Shown: positions 3,294 to 58,309 of the stretch, in pieces
How the letters are laid out: each line of letters begins with the position of its first letter
How positions within the stretch are numbered: the stretch's first letter is position 1
Origin: Selaginella moellendorffii
Taxonomy: Eukaryota > Plantae > Lycopodiophyta
Length of the DNA stretch: 64,000 bases
Assembly (NCBI RefSeq): GCF_000143415.4
Contig: NW_003314322.1
Location: 1,066,067-1,130,066, forward strand
Direction of reading: 5' to 3'
Notes under the pieces: model-generated
The model's input: only the letters and a program-made list of their open reading frames with translations
Databases searched by the model: none
Told to the model about the DNA's origin: nothing
Made by a program: the position numbers and the translations under genes

Positions 3294-4967
3294 ATGAGTC
3301 GTTCCAGCAGAACAATATACGTTGGCAACCTTCCCGGTGATGTGCGAGAGAGTGAAATCGACGATTTGTTTTACAAGGTAAGACCCTTGTTTCGTTTTTA
3401 TGTCGTCTAAAAATCTCTTTTTTTCTTCTTGCTGCAGTATGGGCGTATCTTAGATATCGATTTGAAGCTGCCCCCCAGGCCTCCTGGTTATGCTTTTATA
3501 GAGGTATTCAGCTGAAGCATTTGTCCTTTGCAGCTTACTAAAGTTTTTTGTTCTCGCTCTGTCAGTTTGACGATCCTCGGGATGCTGAAGACGCCATCAA
3601 AGCTAGAGATGGCTATGTTTTTGACGGCCACCGTTTGCGGGTATGCTAGAGCTTTGAATGTGGACTGACGGGCTTACTTTTACCCCACAGGTAGAATTTG
3701 CTCATAGTGGTGGTCGTGGTCATCCCTCTTATGGCGGTGATCGGCATAGCAATAGCTACCGTGGTGGTGGTGGTGGAGGGGGAGGCGGCGGTGGAGGCGG
3801 CCGCGGGGTTTCTAGGCGCTCAGAGTACAGAGGTAGGATTTTTGTTTTCTCTTGCTGTAAAAACTCACATTATTGTGCTGCAGTTGTAGTGACGGGTTTA
3901 CCATCGTCGGCCTCCTGGCAGGATCTGAAAGTGAGACATTCTTTCCTGTCTTTTACCCGATTAAACTTTGTCTTGTGTATAGGATCATATGCGTACAGCT
4001 GGAGATGTTTGTTTCGCTCAAGTTTTCCGGGAGTCGAATGGTAATGAATGCTCTTATTCTAAGCTTTTTGTTCTGACTTCCCTGACGACAGGAACCAGAG
4101 GCATTGTCGACTTTACAAACTATGATGACATGAAAAATGCGGTATACATTCTTTCTTCTTGTACTCGTCAATGTTCTTATACTCTTCTTAACAGATACGA
4201 AAACTCGACGACACTGAGTTTCGCAATCCTTTTTCGCATTCATACATTCGGGTAAGCTGCACACGCTTATTGTTTGTGTCATTGATTTGGAACGTGTTTT
4301 GTAGGTGAGGGAGGATAAATCGGGAGCAAAGCGGAGCACAAGCCGCAGCCGCAGCCGCAGCTGGAGTCGCGGCAGCCGTAGCCGCAGTCGGAGCCGCAGC
4401 CGCAGCAGGAGGTAGCGATCGAGTTTTCCTTTCTCTAAAACCGAACCTGTCTTGCAGTGCTAAAAGCCGGTCGAGGTCAAAGAGTAGATCTCGCTCCCCA
4501 GCGCGTCGATCCCGCTCGCCAGTGCGTCGCTCTCGCTCGCGCTCGGCATCACGCTCTCCTGCGCGGAATGAGCTTTCAAGGTATAAGTTAAAACTTTATT
4601 CGGAGACATTGTTCCTTGGTGGTATTCTCACGGTGGTGATTGTCTCAGATCAAAGTCGCCAGTTGTGAAGCGTAAATCAACGTCTCGCTCCCGCTCTCGC
4701 TCGCGGTCACGATCGCCTACACCCCGGGTAAGCCGAGAGTTTAAAGGTTCGTTGAGATGAGAATGATCGATTTGTCTCTGGCAGGCACAAGACACGGCTG
4801 CAAACAACAAATCCGGCAGCCCAAACGGTCGCGGTAGTCCCAGTCCCAGCAGGAGCCCCAGCCCCAAGCCCGAGAACAACAACATCGCCACCGAGGAGAA
4901 CGACACAGTCATGAACGATAAGTCGCCTGGTGCTCGGAGCCCATCACCCGTTTCGGAGGGTGCTTAA
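3294..4967 (+). CDS. SR34: SF2/ASF-type serine/arginine-rich splicing factor (SR30/SR34 family), many exons
   Basis: [19 protein letters not shown]1, Gly linker, RRM2 with the SWQDLKDHMR signature, RS-repeat tail, stop at 4965-4967. Confidence 0.9.
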
Positions 4968-5252
4968 ATCTAATCTCAAGAGCAAGGAACAAGCAAGCAA
5001 GCAAGCAAGAAGAAAAACAATTTTTCTAACTGTTGTAGAATACATATGCTTTTTTTTATTTTATTTTTATCAATCTGGATTCGATGTTTGTGTGCTATCG
5101 TTGTTTCGAAATAGACACTAAGGCATAAAACTCGACAGTTGACGAAGGTTAGATAATCGACCCGGTTCCCAAGATGTACAAATCGACTTTATCAATGGAT
5201 CCTCGAAAGAAGTGTGAGAAGAAAATAAATATCGAGAGAGAGAACCTGGTTT

Positions 5253-6647
5253 TCAGACAATGGCAATGGCTTCTTCGAGGACTGGAGTGACGCTGCTCAC
5301 TGGAGCCTGCCAATCCGGCGAGGGCCTCAAATGCCATCTATACGGGTCATCCGGAGCTAAAACCTTAGGAACTGGATGACTGCTAACGGGCTCGTTCAGG
5401 CTTTCGTGCTCCTTCTTGAGATAGTAGCCCCACTTCACTTGTATTCCTAGCCTGCCAAAGTAAACATCTTGAGTAGCGAGAAACTTTGGTGCCAGCGTAC
5501 CATGCGACAAACGAGATGCCAATGACTGTGGTGAATGAAAGTGCTACTCGGTCATCTGAGAACTTGATAAACCTGCATTTTGGAGAAGAGAGTTATCAAA
5601 GCAGCATTACACCGCGGAAAAACATACCCCATAGTGCACAGCAATGCGAGAAAGAATGACACACCTGCAGGAAAGGACTCGACGTAAACCACTCGTCTCA
5701 AGTGAGTGACGACGAAATACCCCAGAAGAAGAGAGAGAACGCAGTGTTCCAGTAGTCTTTGCACCTGCAACGAAGCAAATCAGCTCAAACACTAGGCTTT
5801 TGGATTGAGATATGACTACCTGGCCGCCCAGAAGTTTTGAAACGTCCGGGAGGGAACGGGAGGGGGTTGCGACGGAGCAGCCGATTCAGCATAGGAATGG
5901 CACAGGGCCATGAATTCTTCCTCGGCATGCTCGGAAACAAACGACTTTCCCATCCGGAGAATGCATCCGAGGAGATAGACGCAAATAATCGTCGAAGTTG
6001 TCATCAAAGTTGGCTGAAAGGTTTCTTAGAATCAATCAAAGCTAAGATGTGTCTCAAAAGCAAAAAAAGCTTACAACGATGGCTGTACAGATCGCGTAAG
6101 GCATCAAGCGTCCCTGTCAAAAGGAAGTGTCACAGAAAGAAAAGGATGTAGGTAGAAAACTTTATCGCTTTTACCGCACGGATGGATTTTGGTGTGTTGA
6201 ACTCGACCGGGGCCGTCATGGTGAAGCTCGTCACCAGTCCAGTGATCCAGCTCAACGATCGCAAATGCTCAGATTTTTCTTCCACATCTCGCCTGTTTAG
6301 CTCTGAAAATCTGTGCAAAATTCCATCTCTTCCTCCAACACTTCACAAAAGAAGAAACACTCGCCTTGACCACACGTATCGCGAATTCTCGATTCTCCGC
6401 TGCTTCATATCCTCCTCCCTCCACCTGAATATCGAAGCTCAAATCGATCCGAGCGATCAGAACATACGATTCACCTGTGCATTTCTTCCCGGAACGCGGC
6501 CTCCTCGGCGCGGGCCTCGATCTCCTCGGCCCGAAGCTCCATATCCTCCGCCCGCCAGGCCCGATCCTCCTCTCTCCAAGCCCTCTCTCGCTCCCTCCAT
6601 TCCCTCACGAGCCATGTATCCAGAGCGCTCAGCCCAACGTACGCCAT
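5253..6647 (-). CDS. Orai/CRAC calcium-channel-like protein, 4 TM, ~8 exons
   Basis: Spliced product: MAYVGLSALDTWLVREWRERERAWREEDRAWRAEDM...WREEDMKQRRIENSRYVWSRFSELNRRDVEEKSEHLRSLSWITGLVTSFTMTAPVEF (TM1 with the selectivity Glu), then TM2, TM3 ending in GFIKF, and TM4. Introns are GT-AG except one GC-AG. Confidence 0.75.
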
Positions 6648-6724
6648 TTACTCCAAAAACCCTAAAATCTCGAAACGTTGACTTCTTCTGGTCAATGTAT
6701 CATAACTGGGATATTCCCTGTTAC

Positions 6725-6767
6725 ATTAAAGCCATTTGCCTCCCAAACTTTCAAACCTTGGGCGGGA
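6725..6767. promoter_or_regulatory. CHR-like (TTCAAA/TTTGAA) plus E2F/CDE-like (GGGCGGGA) module upstream of cyclin A copy 1
   Basis: ttaaagc..cctcccaaa.ttcaaa.cctt.gggcggga, also present upstream of cyclin A copy 2. Confidence 0.5.
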
Positions 6768-6987
6768 CAAATGGCCCGATCCGAGGGCCCAGATGCTGCC
6801 AACCGGTCTGGCTGCATCTCGACCGCCGGATCGCGGACTTAAGCTCCAGCTGTGGAGCTTGCTTTTCCCCATCCCTAATCTTCCGGATTGCGGGGCTGCG
6901 CGCTCTCAATGCTGCGGGGCGGATCGGTGCCTCGATTGACGCGCTGTGATTAGGCATAGCTCGGATCGTCTCAGGTATTCTGGAAGA

Positions 6988-8886
6988 ATGTCGAGCGATG
7001 GGGCGGATCGGAGGCTGCGGAGCCGGACCAGCTCGTGGACTGGATCTCAAAAGAGCGCGGGGCAGTCGTCCCAGCCGAGATTGGCGTCCAAGCGAGCGGC
7101 ATTGGACGATGGTCGGGCTTGGAGCAGCGGCGGCAGCAGCAGCAGCAGCGCGGTCACGGCGCTTTCCCAGGGCAAGAAGCGAGCGGCATTGTCGAGCCTC
7201 TCCAACTCGGCCAACGTCCCAGCCATGCGAGCTACAGTGACCCCGAAATCCCAGGTTCTTCTTTTTTCCCTGTCTGTTCGTTTGTTCGTGGGCTTTCTTT
7301 TAAGAGGGTGTGACTCTTTGTTGTGTAGATTGTGGTCACAAAGCCAAAGTCTCGTGGGCTTCACGAGAAGAAGGCCTTGAAGAAAGTTTCCAAGCCCGTC
7401 GTTAAGGCTGTGGCGATTGAATCGGTGCCAGACAAGAGTGATAGTGTAGCTGAGGTCAGGGTGGAGAATCTGGAGTCCCCGGCTGTGAAGGCTGACCCTC
7501 AAGCTGTCCTCTCTCTTGAACGAAAGACCGTCCAGAGTTTGTACATTTCGAGGGAGCCCAAAGAGACCGGTAAGTTGTTTCTCCGTCAACTATTGTAATG
7601 TCGATTGCTTTTCGAGTGTAGAATTGCAGCAGGGAGTCGCAAGCAGCAACTCCATTGATGCGTCTCTGAAGGACATCGATGCTGGGATCAAGGATCCACA
7701 GATGTGTGGGCTATATGCTACAGACATATACCAACATCTTCGAATGGCTGAGGTATGAAATAGTTCTGGTTGATAGTTCGTAGTAAACCTTCAGCCTTGT
7801 AGCTCAAGAGGAGGCCGTCGACGAACTTCATGGAATTCATACAACAAGATATCAACCCCGGTATGCGAGGGATACTTGTAGACTGGCTTGTGGAGGTAAA
7901 GTCCCTCGTTCTGATTTATTGATTAATTTGCGTGCTTTCACAGGTTGCTGAAGAGTATAAACTGGTTCCAGACACGCTATACCTTACTGTGTCCTACATC
8001 GATCGCTTCCTTTCTGCGAACGTCGTCAGTCGGCAACGGTTACAGCTGCTTGGAGTCTCTTGCATGCTTATTGCGTCGTAAGTATTATCCGATCAAATGG
8101 TGGATAATAAACATTATTTTTCAGGAAGTACGAGGAGATATGTGCGCCCCAGGTGGAAGAATTCTGCTATATCACCGATAACACGTACTCAAAGTCGGAG
8201 GTCGTAGATTGATCTGTACTTCACTTTTTTCATACGCTAACTGTGTTGTGTAATCAGCTCGTTGACATGGAGAGGCAAGTGCTCTGCCAGTTGCGGTTTG
8301 AGCTCACAACTCCGACAATTAAGACATTCATCCGACGATTTATGAGGGCTGCTCAGGCAGCGTACCAGGTTTGTCTTTCGACAGCAAGTGTTGCTAATTC
8401 GAATTGAGTTAAAATTTAGGAACCATCTCTTCAGCTGGAGTTTCTTGGAAATTATCTAGCAGAACTTAGTCTTGTGGAGTACAGCTTCTTAAAATACATG
8501 CCGTCGATGATTGCTGCGTCAGCCGTTTTCCTGGCGAGGCTTACTCATAATCCTGCGGCAAAGCCTTGGGTGAGTGTTACAAGCTTCCGCTATTAAAGCT
8601 TAACTGTCACTGTGTTTGCATTGCAGGATGCGACATTGTCTCGTTACACCCGCTACAAAGCCTCGGAATTGTCAGAATGTGTGGCTGATATGTATGATCT
8701 ACAGCGGAACATCAAGGGCTGCGGACTGCCAGCAACTAGAGAAAAATACAAGCAACACAAGGTAAGCTTGCTTTTGTAGTAAAAAAAACCACATGTAAAC
8801 TATCTATTTCGTCCTGGCAGTTCAAGTGTGTCTCAAGTTTGCAACCCCCGGTTTTGGCTCCCGAACACTTTCAAGATGACGCGTAG
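6988..8886 (+). CDS. CYCA: A-type cyclin (copy 1)
   Basis: D-box [47 protein letters not shown] cyclin-box signature, stop at 8884-8886. Confidence 0.93.
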
Positions 8887-33427: not shown

Positions 33428-34444
33428 TTAGCCCTTGACCCTCTTCCTGGCCTCCTCCACGATGGAAAGCTTGATACCTTTGCCTTTGGGAAGAGAGACC
33501 CACGGCTTGGTCCCCTGGCCAATGGTGAAAACGTTGCCCATTCGGGTGGCGAAGTCCTGACCGACCGAGTCCTTGATGTGAATGATGTCGAAGCTCCCCT
33601 TGTGCTTCTCTCGGTGCTGAATGGTACCGACTCTCCCCCTGTTGCGACCACCAGTGACCATCACCAAGTTGCCAACGTCGAACTTGATGAACTCCTTGAT
33701 CTTGCCAGTCTCCAGGTCGATCTTGATCGTGTCGTTGGCCTTGATCAGAGGGTCCGGGTAGCGGATGGTTCTCCCGTCGTAAGTCGTCAGGAACGGGATC
33801 CCCTTGGCACCGAACCTCACGGCGCGGACCTTGCAGAGCTTGAACTGTTGACACCAAAACAAAGTTACTACGGAAAGAAAGCACTTGGAGATGTGAGTGA
33901 ATGAGTACCTTGGCCTCCTCGGAGTTGATCGAGTGCAAGGTGAATCGGCCCTTGCTGTCATAGAGGAGACGGTAGTTCTCATCCACCTTGCCGACCGTCA
34001 ACACATCTAGAAAAGCGAAACAAGCAAGTCAGTCGGGTAAGAGAGGAAAAGAAATCGAGAACTTACCCATGAATCCAGCGGGATAGCACTTGTCCGTCCG
34101 GACCTTGCCATCAATCGAGATGAGCTTTTGCATCACGATTGCGACCACCTCTCGGTAAGTCAAGGCATAGTTGAGCCTGTTTCGAAGTACAATCACCAGA
34201 GGCAAGCATTCCCTCTCCTTGTGAGGGCCCGACGATGGCTTTGGAGCCTGGAAAAGCAAGGCCGCCGTGAGCGCACGGATCTACCTGGGACAACAAAGGG
34301 GAACAGATACTTACAAAGGCACCGCCGAGCTTGCTCAGCATCCAATGCTTGGGGGCATTGAGCACCTTGAGATGCTTCTTCGGCCCGCGCACCTGCACAA
34401 CACAAGAATCGTAAGATCCCGCGATAGCCGCGCGCTCTCACCAT
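33428..34444 (-). CDS. RPS4: 40S ribosomal protein S4 (eS4)
   Basis: [57 protein letters not shown]. Confidence 0.96.
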
Positions 34445-34955
34445 TGCTCCACGCTCCTCCGCCTAGAACCCTAGCCGCCGTGGAAACCCTCAAAAACAGG
34501 AATTAGGGCTAGGGCATGTGAAAATTTTAAAATATTTTTTAATGTTAATATTGAATAGAGTATTCTTAAGAAAGAAATATCTTATTAGTCTTTCTCATAA
34601 CTAACTCAAAGCTTTTGAGCAATAAGAACATTAAATATATTGATTTACAATTTATTATTTTCTTTTAAATTATTAATAAAGCTATACAATGAGAATTTTA
34701 TGACAATCAATAAGATGATAAAACTAACTCATAAAGTAATTCACATTATATTATGTACATAAATCAAAATTTAATGTTAAAAAGTGAAACTATTAAATAT
34801 CATTGAAAACTAATATATGGTAAAACAAAATACATTTTATTATATATTACATAAATAAATTAGTCAATTAAATTCAAAAAAATTATAAAAAGAATAAAAT
34901 TCCATATATATTTAGGATGGTTTTTGCAATAAATCTTATCTTTATGGATTTTCAA

Positions 34956-34958
<3 letters not shown>

Positions 34959-35021
<63 letters not shown>
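34959..35021. repeat. (TA)n microsatellite
   Basis: About 31 units, read directly. Confidence 0.95.
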
Positions 35022-35023
<2 letters not shown>

Positions 35024-35617
35024 TAAAATTATGGCAACAAATATGTAATTGTGTGTGGGAGAATTATACATTTACATATATACTGATTTTTTTTTTTGTT
35101 TTAAATTGCATGAAAAATATTATGCACACAATCACTTTTAGATTGTTATTAAGCAATTAAAATGTGATTGTCTGTATAATATTTTTATTATGGGATATAT
35201 CATATATAATATTTTTTTGGTCTTATTTTGTGTTATTGAATATAAATTTATGACATCTTGATTATGATCATCTTTTTCCTACTTTATGTTCATTTTATTT
35301 GCCTTCTATTCCGTGTGGTTGTGCATCATTTACTGCAATTTAAAAATGTATTTTGATTGCAATACACACTAATGTAAATATAATGCTTCAATCATATTTA
35401 CAAATGTTTTTCATTTCTTACAACTTATTTAAAGTGCAATATTTTAATATAGAGTTTGTGGATATGATGTTTTTCATTTTTTCATTAAGCGTGTTAAATT
35501 TTAAATGCATTTTAGATGCCATGAGCTAAGCTTGCCAGCACTATATATTTAAAACACTTTTATTGGTGAGGATAATAGAAAGAACTTTACATATTAAGCC
35601 CAAATCATTATAATACT

Positions 35618-35620
<3 letters not shown>

Positions 35621-35683
<63 letters not shown>
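35621..35683. repeat. (TA)n microsatellite
   Basis: About 31 units, read directly. Confidence 0.95.
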
Positions 35684-35685
<2 letters not shown>

Positions 35686-36931
35686 TTAGAAACATGATAA
35701 ATAATTAGAACTAACACTTTACTACAGCTATAATAAAACCCACTTGCTCATAAAAAACTATTGCACTCAACACCCCAAATATTCAAAAAAGATTTTGTGC
35801 TCATCTTCACATTTTAATCGATCACACTCATCTATACACCAATCAATCATTAAACCTAAAGCTTATACTTTAGTGACATATAAAAAAATCTTATATAAAG
35901 TCAAATTTACACAAGACAAAAAATCATATATATAACACTATCTAGACTTTACTATGCATATTTGGTAGGCACTAATACATGGATAAATTGTGTTTAAAAT
36001 ATTTGTGAGTCATATATATGTATTACAACAATTTAAACACATCTATTTTTTTTTTTTCATGTTTTTTGCAAGCTTCAACAATTTTTTATGAAATCACCCT
36101 CCTTGACGTGTACCTCTTTTTCAAAATTATTATCACAAATTTCTTGCTAAATAAAATTAGAAGGCTAATTGTATGAAAAATTATTTTGAAAAACATGTAA
36201 ACTTCTTTGATCTTAATATACCTCTCTTAAAATTTAAATTAAAGTCTATTTATGTACTTTTGTGTTTGATGTTAAATTTATCATAAAAATTACTTCCACT
36301 CAAAGTGGTATGCTAAGAACATTAATGCGTTAAAACGTGAGAAATGTAGTAGCCTAGTACCGCAAGCGACACAAGCCCCTTATGATCCTCATTAATTCCA
36401 CCACGTCCGTAGGCTATATTTGAGCCATGGCAATGGGTCCAAGCCCATTTCTTTTCTTAGCTGGAAAGACGCGGCTACATTTATGTCATATAACGCAAGC
36501 CCTCATCTCCGTACCACTTGGAAACTTTAAAAGTTTAAAATCTCTCCTTCCCGCGCGGCATTGACTGGTGGACCATCAGGCCGTCAAGCGTTTGCCATTA
36601 ACTAGCCGTCCGCGTTGGGAACCAGGCCGTCAGCCCGTCAAAGAAGGACACGTGACTCACTTTCGGGGCATTTGATTGGCCCAGGTAAAAACTCGGGTCG
36701 CCTCTGCTTTACCTGCCTCGAGGGTTTATCAAGGCTAGGTCAAAATCGAGCAAGAAAATGGCGCTGGCAGAGATGCGAATGGATTGGGCGGACAGGAGGA
36801 CCCTTCAGAAATCTCTGCTCGAGCGGGAAGATTGATCGTGAATCGTTAAAGTCTCTCACAAATCTCCACTCATTTTTTCTCATCTTCCTCTCGCAGTAGC
36901 AGTAGCAGTAGCAGCAGCAGTAGCAACAGCG

Positions 36932-55593: not shown

Positions 55594-57732
55594 AATTTTA
55601 GCAAAATATAAAAAGGGGTAAATATGGATGGAAAAATTGTATATTTAAAAGTTATTTTTAACATTATTTTAACTAATGTGAAATTTTTTTCATCATTATA
55701 TACTGGATCACCACTAGCTAGTTTATAAATCGTAAAAATTATTTTATAAAAGAACAAATGTAATGTTAATTTCATGTGGCAAGTTAATATCCTTGGAGAA
55801 TTTATATAGCTAGTGCAATATAATATTTATATATTATGCTCAATAAAAATAAAGAGTTATTGATGATAGTTTTTAGTTTCAAAATCAAAATTAAAAAGCT
55901 TCCCATATCTTTCAGAAATTTGAAAATATTACCCTTAAAGCCTGTTTTATTAGTTTAAGACTCTTAAAATCATAATAAATATACATTTAAACTATAATAA
56001 ATGTAAATAGTAAATATTTTAATTAAGAAATAGCATTAAAGATATGTAATTTAAAAAGGGAGTTTAACCTCTTTTCAGAAGGAGGGTGGAGAAAAAACCC
56101 TTCCCAAGTTTACCGTCTTGCATGCACAAGACTAGCCGATCGTCATTAAATGCCACCACACCAAAGGCAATGCTGTTGAGGAGTATATATGCCTAAAGCT
56201 TAATGAATGGGTATATGCTCTGGTCGCCCTTCATATGACAAGTATGCCACCCTATTGAGTTTAGCAAAAGTGAAAAATTTATCATTTATTAATATTCATT
56301 TACATGAATTTTAGCAAAATATAAAAAGGGGTAAATATGGATGGAAAAATTGTACATTTAAAAGTTATTTTTAACATTATTTTAACTAATGTGAATTTTT
56401 TTCATCATTATATACTGGATCACCACTAGCTAGTTTATAAATCGTAAAAATTATTTTATAAAAGAAAAAATGTAATGTTAATTTCATATGGCAAGTTAAT
56501 ATCTTTGGAGAATTTATGTAGCTAGTGCAATATAACATTTATATGTTATACTCAATAAAAATAAAGAGTTATTGATGATAGTTTTTAGTTTCAAAATCAA
56601 AATTAAAAAAGCTTCCCATATCTTTCAGAAATTTGAAAATATTACCCTTAAAGCCTGTTTTATTAGTTTAAGACTCTTAAAATCATAATAAATATACATT
56701 TTAAACTATAATAAATGTAAATAGTAAATATTTTAATTAAGAAATAACATTAAAGATATGTGATTTAAAAAGGGAGTTCAACCTCTTTTGAGAAGGAGAG
56801 TGGAGAAGAAATGCTTCCCACGTCCACCATTTCGCATGCACAAGGCTAGCTAATCGTTATTAAATGCCACCACATCAAAAGCAACACTATTCAAAAGTAT
56901 ATATGCCTAGAGCTTAGCGAATGGGTACATGTTTTGGTCGCCCTTCCTATGATAAGTATGCCACCCCATTGAATTTAGCAAAAGTATAAATTTTATCATT
57001 TATTAATATTCATTTACATGAATTTTAGCAAAATATAAAAAGGGGTAAATATGCATGGAAAAATTGTACATTTAAAAGTTATTTTTAACATTATTTTAAC
57101 TAATGTGAATTTTTTTCATCATTATATACTGGATCACCACTAGCTAGTTTATAAATCGTAAAAATTATTTTATAAAAGAAAAAATGTAATGTTAATTTCA
57201 TGTGGCAATTTAATATCTTTGGAGAATTTATATAGCTAATGCAATATAACATTTATATGTTATGCTCAATAAAAATAAAGAGTTATTGATGATAGTTTTT
57301 AGTTTCAAAATCAAAATTAAAAAAGCTTCCCATATCTTTCAGAAATTTGAAAATATTACCCTTAAAGTCTGTTTTATTAGTTTAAGACTCTTAAAATCAT
57401 AATAAATATACATTTAAAACTATAATAAATGTAAATAGTAAATATTTTAATTAAGAAATAGCATTAAAAATATGTGATTTAAAAAGGGAGTTCAACCTCT
57501 TTCGAAAAGGAGAGTGGAGAAAAAACACTTCCCACGTCCACCATCTCGTATACATAAAACCAGCTAATCGTCATTAAATGCCACCACACCAAAGGCAACA
57601 CTATTAAGGAGTATATATGCCCAGAGTTTAGCGAATGGATACATGCTTTAGTCACCCTTTCTATAACAAATATGCCACCCCATTGAATTTAGCAAAAGTG
57701 AAATTTTATCATTTATTAATATTCATTTACAT
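55594..57732. repeat. Three head-to-tail copies of a ~713-bp AT-rich unit
   Basis: aattttagcaaaatataaaaaggggta recurs at 55594, 56307 and 57021. Confidence 0.95.
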
Positions 57733-58309
57733 AAAGAATTACAGATGAATAATTCTGGATGCTTAGCTAAAAGTTGCAAAAACCCCTCTCCATTAGCAAA
57801 AAAAGAATAATAACTAGCAAAACCATCTTCCTCAAAACCATGTTAATGTCCTGCGAAAACGTGGACAACAGCTCCTACTTGTACACTGCCACGGATTCCA
57901 CCTTTTGCAGGATCGGAGTGAGACGCCCACCATGCTTGGAAACCTGTCTCAAATCTTGGCCAATCCACCACCATGAAGCTAGTGTCAACAGGACAATCAA
58001 TTCCAATGGCAGCGGCCTCGCATAGGCAGGCAAGCAGCGTGGCACAAGGATCCCAGCGAGCTGATTCAGATGAATCACGGGCTCAGGCGGCGGACTATAA
58101 TTCCATAGCAACAAAGTGCTTTTTTTGCCACTGCCCGACCTTAGAGATAACCCTACTATCTTAGGGTTCTTTTTACAAAGGGGAAAAGTTTCCAGTGCAA
58201 TTTTCACAGAATCCAACAAAAGCCATGCTATTATATGGAAAATCCTACTCATTCTTGAATTAAGAACACAGTCACTGATTACTCCTCAATGGCGCTGGTC
58301 GAGTCTCTA

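Follow-up and report, generated by a model that had tools for sequence, protein, structure and literature searches.

An Orai-family gene of Selaginella moellendorffii with the pore signature of an old streptophyte subfamily

The window analysed here is a stretch of 64,000 nucleotides (nt) from Selaginella moellendorffii (contig NW_003314322.1). On its minus strand, at 6647..5253, lies a gene of nine exons and eight introns that almost certainly encodes a subunit of the Orai family. Its first transmembrane helix (TM1) carries tryptophan, serine, threonine and proline at the positions of human Orai1 residues 91, 98, 102 and 104, respectively. Judged from the sequences of related proteins, this W91/S98/T102/P104 set marks an old subfamily of streptophyte Orais, referred to below as clade A, and is not private to the window copy. 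An earlier sequence-only reading of this DNA had pointed out the same four residues, and the clade A counts given below confirm that they are real and have been conserved for hundreds of millions of years.

The 317-amino-acid (aa) product is letter-for-letter identical to S. moellendorffii XP_024545033.1, deposited as “uncharacterized protein LOC9645057”, and the protein-level analyses were run on this identical database entry. The Pfam profile Orai-1 (PF07856) matched it at 148.2 bits against a cut-off of 25 (E 2.5e-43), with residues 80–267 aligned to profile positions 2–172 of 173. Single exons also scored on the same profile (37.1 bits for the TM1 exon and 29.3 bits for the TM2 exon), and the assignment to Orai lies far above chance. 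Searched against the sequences of the PDB, a family profile built from 18 sequences reached Drosophila Orai chains at E 1.6e-12. The top-scoring chain was the K163W mutant (equivalent to human R91W; 4HKS, 6BBH), which outscored wild type 4HKR by ~4.5 bits because the plant consensus has Trp in that very column. The 42-aa TM1 exon alone gave no match to PDB sequences with phmmer; fly Orai was reached only with a full-length relative and with the family profile.

The predicted fold agrees with this assignment. Four transmembrane helices are present: hydropathy is clear for TM2–TM4, and TM1 is amphipathic, as in Orai. The AlphaFold2 (AF2) model has a mean predicted local distance difference test (pLDDT) value of 79, with helices at residues 2–114, 123–162, 194–231 and 235–270. 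The top Foldseek matches were fly Orai chains (best 6bbi_B) with a probability of 1.00 and a TM-score by target of 0.67–0.77; their E-values were only ~5e-3, weakened by the long N-terminal helix. Foldseek matches to long-helix axonemal proteins were treated as artefacts of this 113-residue helix. The Pfam score, the profile matches and the fold matches to fly Orai together uphold the Orai homologue that the sequence-only reading had placed at 5253–6647.

Alignment of TM1 to the Drosophila Orai chains with HMMER is gapless, and the window residue number equals the human number plus 8. The human numbering was taken from the fly PDB chains and from equivalences given in papers (K163=R91, V174=V102, F171=F99, H206=H134, P288=P245 and E178=E106), while G98=G170 and E190=E262 were derived from the offset of 72. 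The fly TM1 stretch is identical to the human string used in the sequence-only reading save for K163 in place of R91. In the inner pore, S91, R95 and W99 correspond to human R83, K87 and R91; in the middle, L103, S106, F107 and T108 correspond to L95, G98, F99 and A100; towards the outside, T110, P112 and E114 correspond to V102, M104 and E106. M140 in TM2 is the equivalent of H134, and L223 in TM3 that of E190 (fly E262), although the TM3–TM4 part of the fly alignment is weaker, at 14.8 bits. The strings predicted from the DNA withstood this comparison. The spliced TM1 string is exact, corresponding to residues 91–114 of the product, with its gapless alignment reproduced through the fly chains; the TM3 string FFLALLCTMGFIKF is also exact, though it spans two splice junctions; and the reported lack of an E190 equivalent was reproduced as L223 in the profile alignment.

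Likeness to human Orai1 and Drosophila Orai (4HKR) extends over the whole Pfam domain, the four transmembrane helices and the fold, and the protein has the filter Glu (E106/E178), F99, L95, M101 and K/R87 at the same gapless TM1 positions, E114 being aligned with fly E178. Three other functional sets have changed. The basic inner pore (R83, K87, R91) is not kept, with S for R83, W for R91 and R95 as the sole basic residue left. The hydrophobic gate/hinge set is not intact: F107 is kept, but S106 replaces G98 and T110 replaces V102. The selectivity-tuning glutamate of TM3 is replaced by L223. Further differences from animal Orai are T for A100, P for M104, M for H134, a loop 1 (NTPKSIRAGR) without acidic residues, a longer and conserved loop 2, and an 80-residue charged N-terminal helix bearing a heptad aromatic stripe. 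In place of the STIM-binding helix there is a predicted-disordered tail with a PFxWHxxP-type motif.

The substituted positions hold the same residue types as the Orai1 mutants R91W (dOrai K163W, 4HKS/6BBH), G98S and V102A/S/T, and the R91W/V102A double mutant is the nearest experimental analogue of the natural W91/T102 pair. Those mutants, however, are single or double changes in a STIM1-gated animal background, whereas the residues of the window protein are anciently fixed. Given the different cytosolic regions and the many other differences, mutant phenotypes are not simply transferable to the window protein.

We then placed the protein among its relatives. A 45-aa TM1-exon query against 1.84 billion representatives gave 20 matches, and a full-length match was used to gather the family, which a profile search enlarged to 67 proteins; a maximum-likelihood tree was built on 45. 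The tree contains three green-lineage Orai groups: clade A, clade B and a chlorophyte group. The clade A branch has a Shimodaira–Hasegawa-like approximate likelihood ratio test (SH-aLRT) value of 99, and its named members include Chara, Closterium, Spirogloea, mosses, two lycophytes, Ginkgo and Picea. Within its embryophytes, mosses, lycophytes and gymnosperms fall into separate groups, matching vertical descent. Clade B consists of other genes of clade A species, including S. moellendorffii LOC9653726 and LOC9644061 and genes of Ginkgo, Ceratodon, Diphasiastrum, Closterium and Spirogloea. Both clades occur in Selaginella, Diphasiastrum, Ceratodon, Physcomitrium, Ginkgo, Closterium and Spirogloea. 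The idea that land plants keep only the W-type Orai was dropped when clade B paralogues from Selaginella, Ginkgo, mosses and Diphasiastrum came up in the profile search. The family matches included no named angiosperm protein, in a search that scored the 8000 best word-sharing candidates only, which is in line with the loss from flowering plants described in the literature.

Column counts were made over 18 clade A, 17 clade B and 15 chlorophyte sequences (human numbering). Position 91 is Trp in 17/18 clade A proteins (Gly in Chara), Asn in 16/17 of clade B, and Asn or Thr in chlorophytes. At position 98, Ser is found in all 14 clade A embryophytes, with Gly, Ala or Asn in the four algae, and Gly in every clade B (17/17) and chlorophyte (15/15) sequence. 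Thr occupies position 100 in 17/18 of clade A, where clade B has Ala (17/17) and chlorophytes mostly Ala (13/15). Position 102 is Thr throughout clade A (18/18) and Val throughout clade B (17/17); chlorophytes have Val, Ser, Thr, Ala or Ile. Pro at position 104 (15/18 in clade A) is matched by Leu in clade B (17/17) and by Phe (11) or Leu (4) in chlorophytes. Finally, the filter position 106 is Glu in 18/18 clade A sequences, Gln in 17/17 clade B sequences, and Gln (9) or Glu (6) in chlorophytes. Among the three Selaginella Orai genes, only the window gene has an acidic filter residue; LOC9653726 and LOC9644061 have Gln. At the E190 position, the green-lineage Orais surveyed are without an acidic residue in all three groups.

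These counts change how the substitutions are to be read. They are real, but not specific to this gene: they represent a clade-wide ancestral state, in which S98 is specific to embryophytes, and polar residues at 102 also occur in chlorophytes without W91. The possibility that they were private marks of a decaying copy does not hold either, as they extend across the clade from Chara to conifers. A suggested role in flagellated sperm is weakened by orthologues in Picea, whose sperm are non-motile, and in Closterium and Spirogloea. Picea sitchensis, Closterium and Spirogloea have no flagellate cells, and a flagellum-specific role of clade A Orai is unlikely, although it may serve motile gametes alongside other tasks.

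Conservation is highest in the cytosol. The best-conserved segment is residues 59–95, the cytosolic continuation of TM1, with a mean majority fraction of 0.76 vs 0.60 for TM1 itself, and 13 of its residues are invariant in the 18-sequence alignment (Q66, R67, N71, W76, R78, E81, N83, R84, R85, V87, E89, K90 and E92). Upstream of it, positions 17, 24, 31, 38, 45, 52 and 59 hold W, F or Y in most of 57 green-lineage Orais; at positions 17, 24, 31 and 59, Trp is found in 52, 53, 40 and 54 of the 57 rows. The helix bearing this aromatic stripe is 53% charged, with many i/i+4 opposite-charge pairs, and the repeat is present in all three green-lineage groups. The sequence-only reading had described it as a WREED-repeat coiled coil. 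The repeat is indeed conserved in all green-lineage clades, but a coiled coil is unproven: with one hydrophobic position per heptad, the pattern is not a classical one. Also common to green-lineage Orais are loop 2 (GKxFV..EEEFM...PPAPRRTFxxFW..RC) and a C-terminal PFxWHxxP-type motif. Thus, clade B and chlorophyte Orais resemble the window protein in the N-terminal aromatic-heptad helix, the near-invariant pre-TM1 motif (NRRDVEEKSEQL type), loop 2, the C-terminal motifs and the lack of E190. They differ from it in the pore, where clade B has N91, G98, A100, V102, L104 and a Q filter (17/17), and in chlorophytes position 91 is N or T, 98 is G, 102 varies and 106 is Q or E.

None of these green-lineage cytosolic elements resembles the STIM-binding regions of animals. 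The tail beyond residue 270 is predicted to be disordered and is unrelated to the animal Orai tail. For the N-terminal 79 residues, Pfam has no family, and an ESM-Atlas feature search with residues 1–95 gave only a match of 0.76, within the chance range.

The literature frames what such a pore might do. In human Orai1, channels with V102A/C/G/S/T or G98S open in the absence of STIM1, and R91W is a loss-of-function change; V102A prevails over loss-of-function mutations of the transmembrane and cytosolic-extension regions, R91W being the exception (PMC7825772). The outer hydrophobic gate is dewetted both by R91W and when the inner basic residues are neutralised, and addition of V102A to R91W restores hydration and current, only under STIM1 gating and in a non-selective form; likewise, V102A in a channel that has lost two or three basic residues (2S/3S) is not constitutively active and is rescued only with STIM1, again non-selectively (PMC7034092). 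Published work reports Orai but no STIM in plants (PMC7016017, PMC11085791), in agreement with the sequence-only reading, and neither plants nor green algae have a known STIM (PMC11085791). How Orai is controlled outside animals, without STIM, is a question raised by recent surveys (PMC11085791).

We lean towards a reading, built by analogy with the human mutants, in which the window protein is an Orai-family pore whose Trp ring is offset by polar residues; it would be closed at rest, opened by an input other than STIM, and probably less Ca2+-selective than CRAC (Ca2+ release-activated Ca2+) channels. The clade A protein would assemble like animal Orai, with TM1 lining the pore. The polar T110 and S106 would keep the outer hydrophobic stretch hydrated, offsetting the dewetting or plugging caused by the W99 ring, a compensation modelled on the V102A rescue of human R91W. 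The combination of W91 and S83 with polar residues at 102 and 98 is nearest to the STIM1-rescued class of double mutants, which makes a closed, activator-dependent channel more likely than a constitutively open one; the lower selectivity is suggested by analogy with R91W/V102A. The activating input would most likely come through residues 59–95, the aromatic-heptad extension at 17–59, loop 2 and the C-terminal PFxWHxxP-type motif, since no STIM is known in plants and the C-terminal tail appears to lack the STIM-binding helix. The STIM-independent channel of the sequence-only reading had implied that G98S and V102T mean a pore open without an activator; the published human Orai1 mutants argue otherwise (PMC7825772, PMC7034092).

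Several points weigh against this model. The compensation idea is an analogy with human point mutants, carried over ~17% identity to fly Orai (Foldseek structural alignment), and the closed, activator-dependent state is likewise extended to plant Orai by analogy. A ring of six Trp residues could render the homomer non-conducting. W91 arose once on the tree, too few events for statistics on its co-variation with position 102; T102 occurs without W91 in Chara, and S/T102 without W91 in chlorophyte Orais. The AF2 model is a monomer, and modelling one chain by itself may have produced its uninterrupted helix of 113 residues as an artefact.

The Trp ring could instead plug the homomer altogether, leaving a non-conducting or modulatory subunit that works as a heteromer partner of clade B or as a scaffold. 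R91W/K163W shuts the pore through dewetting and a hydrophobic plug, seven genera have genes of both clade A and clade B, and the related Jiraiya/TMEM221 branch no longer has the Ca2+-binding residues (PMC7016017). Yet 18/18 clade A sequences keep the filter Glu, along with F99 and L95, as a conducting subunit would be expected to do, and we consider this explanation possible but rather unlikely.

We grant a similarly low probability to a more specific gating scheme for clade A. The outer gate would be weakened by T102 and S98, and the Trp91 ring would serve as a working inner gate, opened directly by movement of the cytosolic TM1 continuation and the aromatic-heptad extension, which would sense a signal from the cytosol or the membrane; Q-filter subunits of clade B might take part as heteromer partners.

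That S98 and T102 simply abolish the hydrophobic gate, producing a constitutively open leak channel controlled only by expression or trafficking, is improbable. Human Orai1 G98S and V102S/T are active without STIM1 (PMC7825772), every clade A sequence has T102, and the embryophytes among them are fixed for S98. However, V102A does not override R91W in human Orai1, and the window protein combines W91 with S83; V102A with two or three inner basic losses does not give a large constitutive current; a permanently open Ca2+-permeable pore would cost the cell dearly; and the strong conservation of the cytosolic segments suggests regulation. A decaying or mis-annotated gene, in which the odd residues are noise, has nothing in its favour and is refuted: the open reading frame (ORF) is intact over nine exons, the introns are spliced in RNA from several studies, orthologues from Chara to conifers have the same residues, and residues 1–262 show no non-synonymous allelic difference.

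The gene model behind these comparisons is documented by RNA. The coding sequence (CDS) of 954 nt runs from an ATG at 6647, with an in-frame TAA immediately 5′ of it, to a TGA at 5255–5253. The same eight joints appear in each of three transcript-contig runs and also in a stranded run of raw RNA reads, and a single 1125-nt transcript contig covers 5100..6665. The introns measure 49–61 nt, and seven of them are GT-AG. Intron 2 (6364..6311) is GC-AG, with the donor AAG/GCGAGT, and is spliced in 4/4 RNA runs, placing the start of exon 3 at 6310. GT-AG joinings of exons 2 and 3, by a 36-nt intron or a second AG, were ruled out by the reads showing GC-AG; the gene model is corrected accordingly, and the TM1 string is unaffected. 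In the stranded run, first mates lie on the plus strand over the Orai gene and on the minus strand over the flanking transcribed stretches on both sides, which is consistent with minus-strand transcription of the Orai gene.

A near-identical protein, XP_024532940.1 (LOC9650622, on a different scaffold), differs from the window protein by H267Y, N271S and W299S. RNA reads reveal a second allele at window positions 5311, 5395, 5406, 5408, 5557, 6202 and 6561, including the nucleotide changes behind all three amino-acid differences; LOC9645057 and LOC9650622 are therefore probably haplotypes of one locus in the assembly. Four of these seven CDS variants are synonymous, and the three non-synonymous ones all lie in exon 9, in the predicted-disordered tail. 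The single-nucleotide polymorphism at 6202 falls in the codon of the filter glutamate E114 and is synonymous (GAG>GAA).

With regard to novelty, it had been published before that Selaginella and Physcomitrella have Orai, that angiosperms have lost it and that STIM is absent. The literature searched yielded no study of the function, localisation or oligomeric state of a plant Orai. It also contained no description of Trp91, the polar gate, the E-/Q-filter split or the conserved pre-TM1 helix, although it lacked several key reviews; within the papers searched, the pore signature appears to be new.

The coordinates of the gene and its parts are collected in the table.

Table. Features of the Orai gene in window coordinates.
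Feature	Position	Strand	Content and evidence
Exon 1	6475..6647	−	N-terminal charged helix with heptad-spaced W17, W24, W31, L38, A45 and F52; RNA joint 6472/6421
Exon 2	6365..6424	−	W59-R60-E-E-D-M-K-Q-R-R..W76, start of the best-conserved segment; RNA joint 6310/6365, + strand ends CT..GC
Exon 3	6175..6310	−	Pre-TM1 cytosolic helix (N83 R84 R85 D V87 E E89 K90 S E92) and TM1; Pfam Orai-1 match on its own
TM1 pore helix, residues 96–116	6196..6258	−	HMMER alignments to Drosophila Orai chains; clade counts
TM1 codons	W99 6249–6247, S106 6228–6226, T110 6216–6214, P112 6210–6208, E114 6204–6202	−	
Exon 4 (13 aa)	6075..6113	−	TM2 start; RNA joints 6112/6174 and 6013/6075
Exon 5	5820..6013	−	Remaining TM2 (M140) and cytosolic loop 2 (GKxFV..EEEFM .. 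PPxPxRTFxxFW); Pfam Orai-1 match on its own
Exon 6	5721..5764	−	TM3 start; RNA joints
Exon 7	5628..5664	−	Mid-TM3 including L223; RNA joints, profile alignment to fly Orai
Exon 8	5501..5572	−	TM3 end (FIKF) and most of TM4; RNA joints, hydropathy
Exon 9	5253..5451	−	TM4 end, predicted-disordered tail and stop; alignment, AF2 pLDDT <50 for residues 267–313
C-terminal motif D287-P-Y-R-W-H-L-R-P295	5348..5322	−	In exon 9, conserved in the alignment
3′ untranslated region (UTR)	5100..5252	−	Transcript contig ends near 5100

The Orai gene has close neighbours on both sides. A convergent plus-strand gene lies at ~4520–4967, with its 3′ UTR extending to ~5042; its contig depth is ~1700 vs 38 for the Orai gene, and its last exons encode an Arg/Ser-rich tail resembling an SR protein. 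The 3′ ends of the two transcripts lie within ~60 nt of each other. On the other side, a divergent plus-strand gene has ORFs at 6879–7400 and is expressed from 6879, ~230 nt upstream of the Orai start codon. The interval 6666–6878 is without read cover, and the two genes probably share a short promoter region. Elsewhere in the window, AT-rich islands (29% G+C) are found at 34001–36000 and 56001–58000, while the rest has 39–61% G+C. Among the related proteins, Chromochloris zofingiensis Cz07g20190 is predicted to hold two tandem Orai domains, with a precomputed Pfam PF15038 match besides Orai; this may reflect a fused gene model or a genuine tandem Orai.

Overall, for several hundred million years clade A has held fixed a combination, R91W with G98S and a polar residue 102, that human genetics and mutagenesis know as pathological or artificial. 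The window gene is a well-defined natural experiment on Orai gating rather than a new system. It offers a natural test case for how Orai operates without STIM, the animal activator, and is relevant both to plant Ca2+ signalling and to the dispute over what the inner pore does in Orai gating. The split into E-filter and Q-filter clades refines the statement that early land plants have Orai. If the reading of the Trp ring as an inner gate were true, clade A would represent a STIM-independent way to run the Orai pore, possibly one nearer to the ancestral one.

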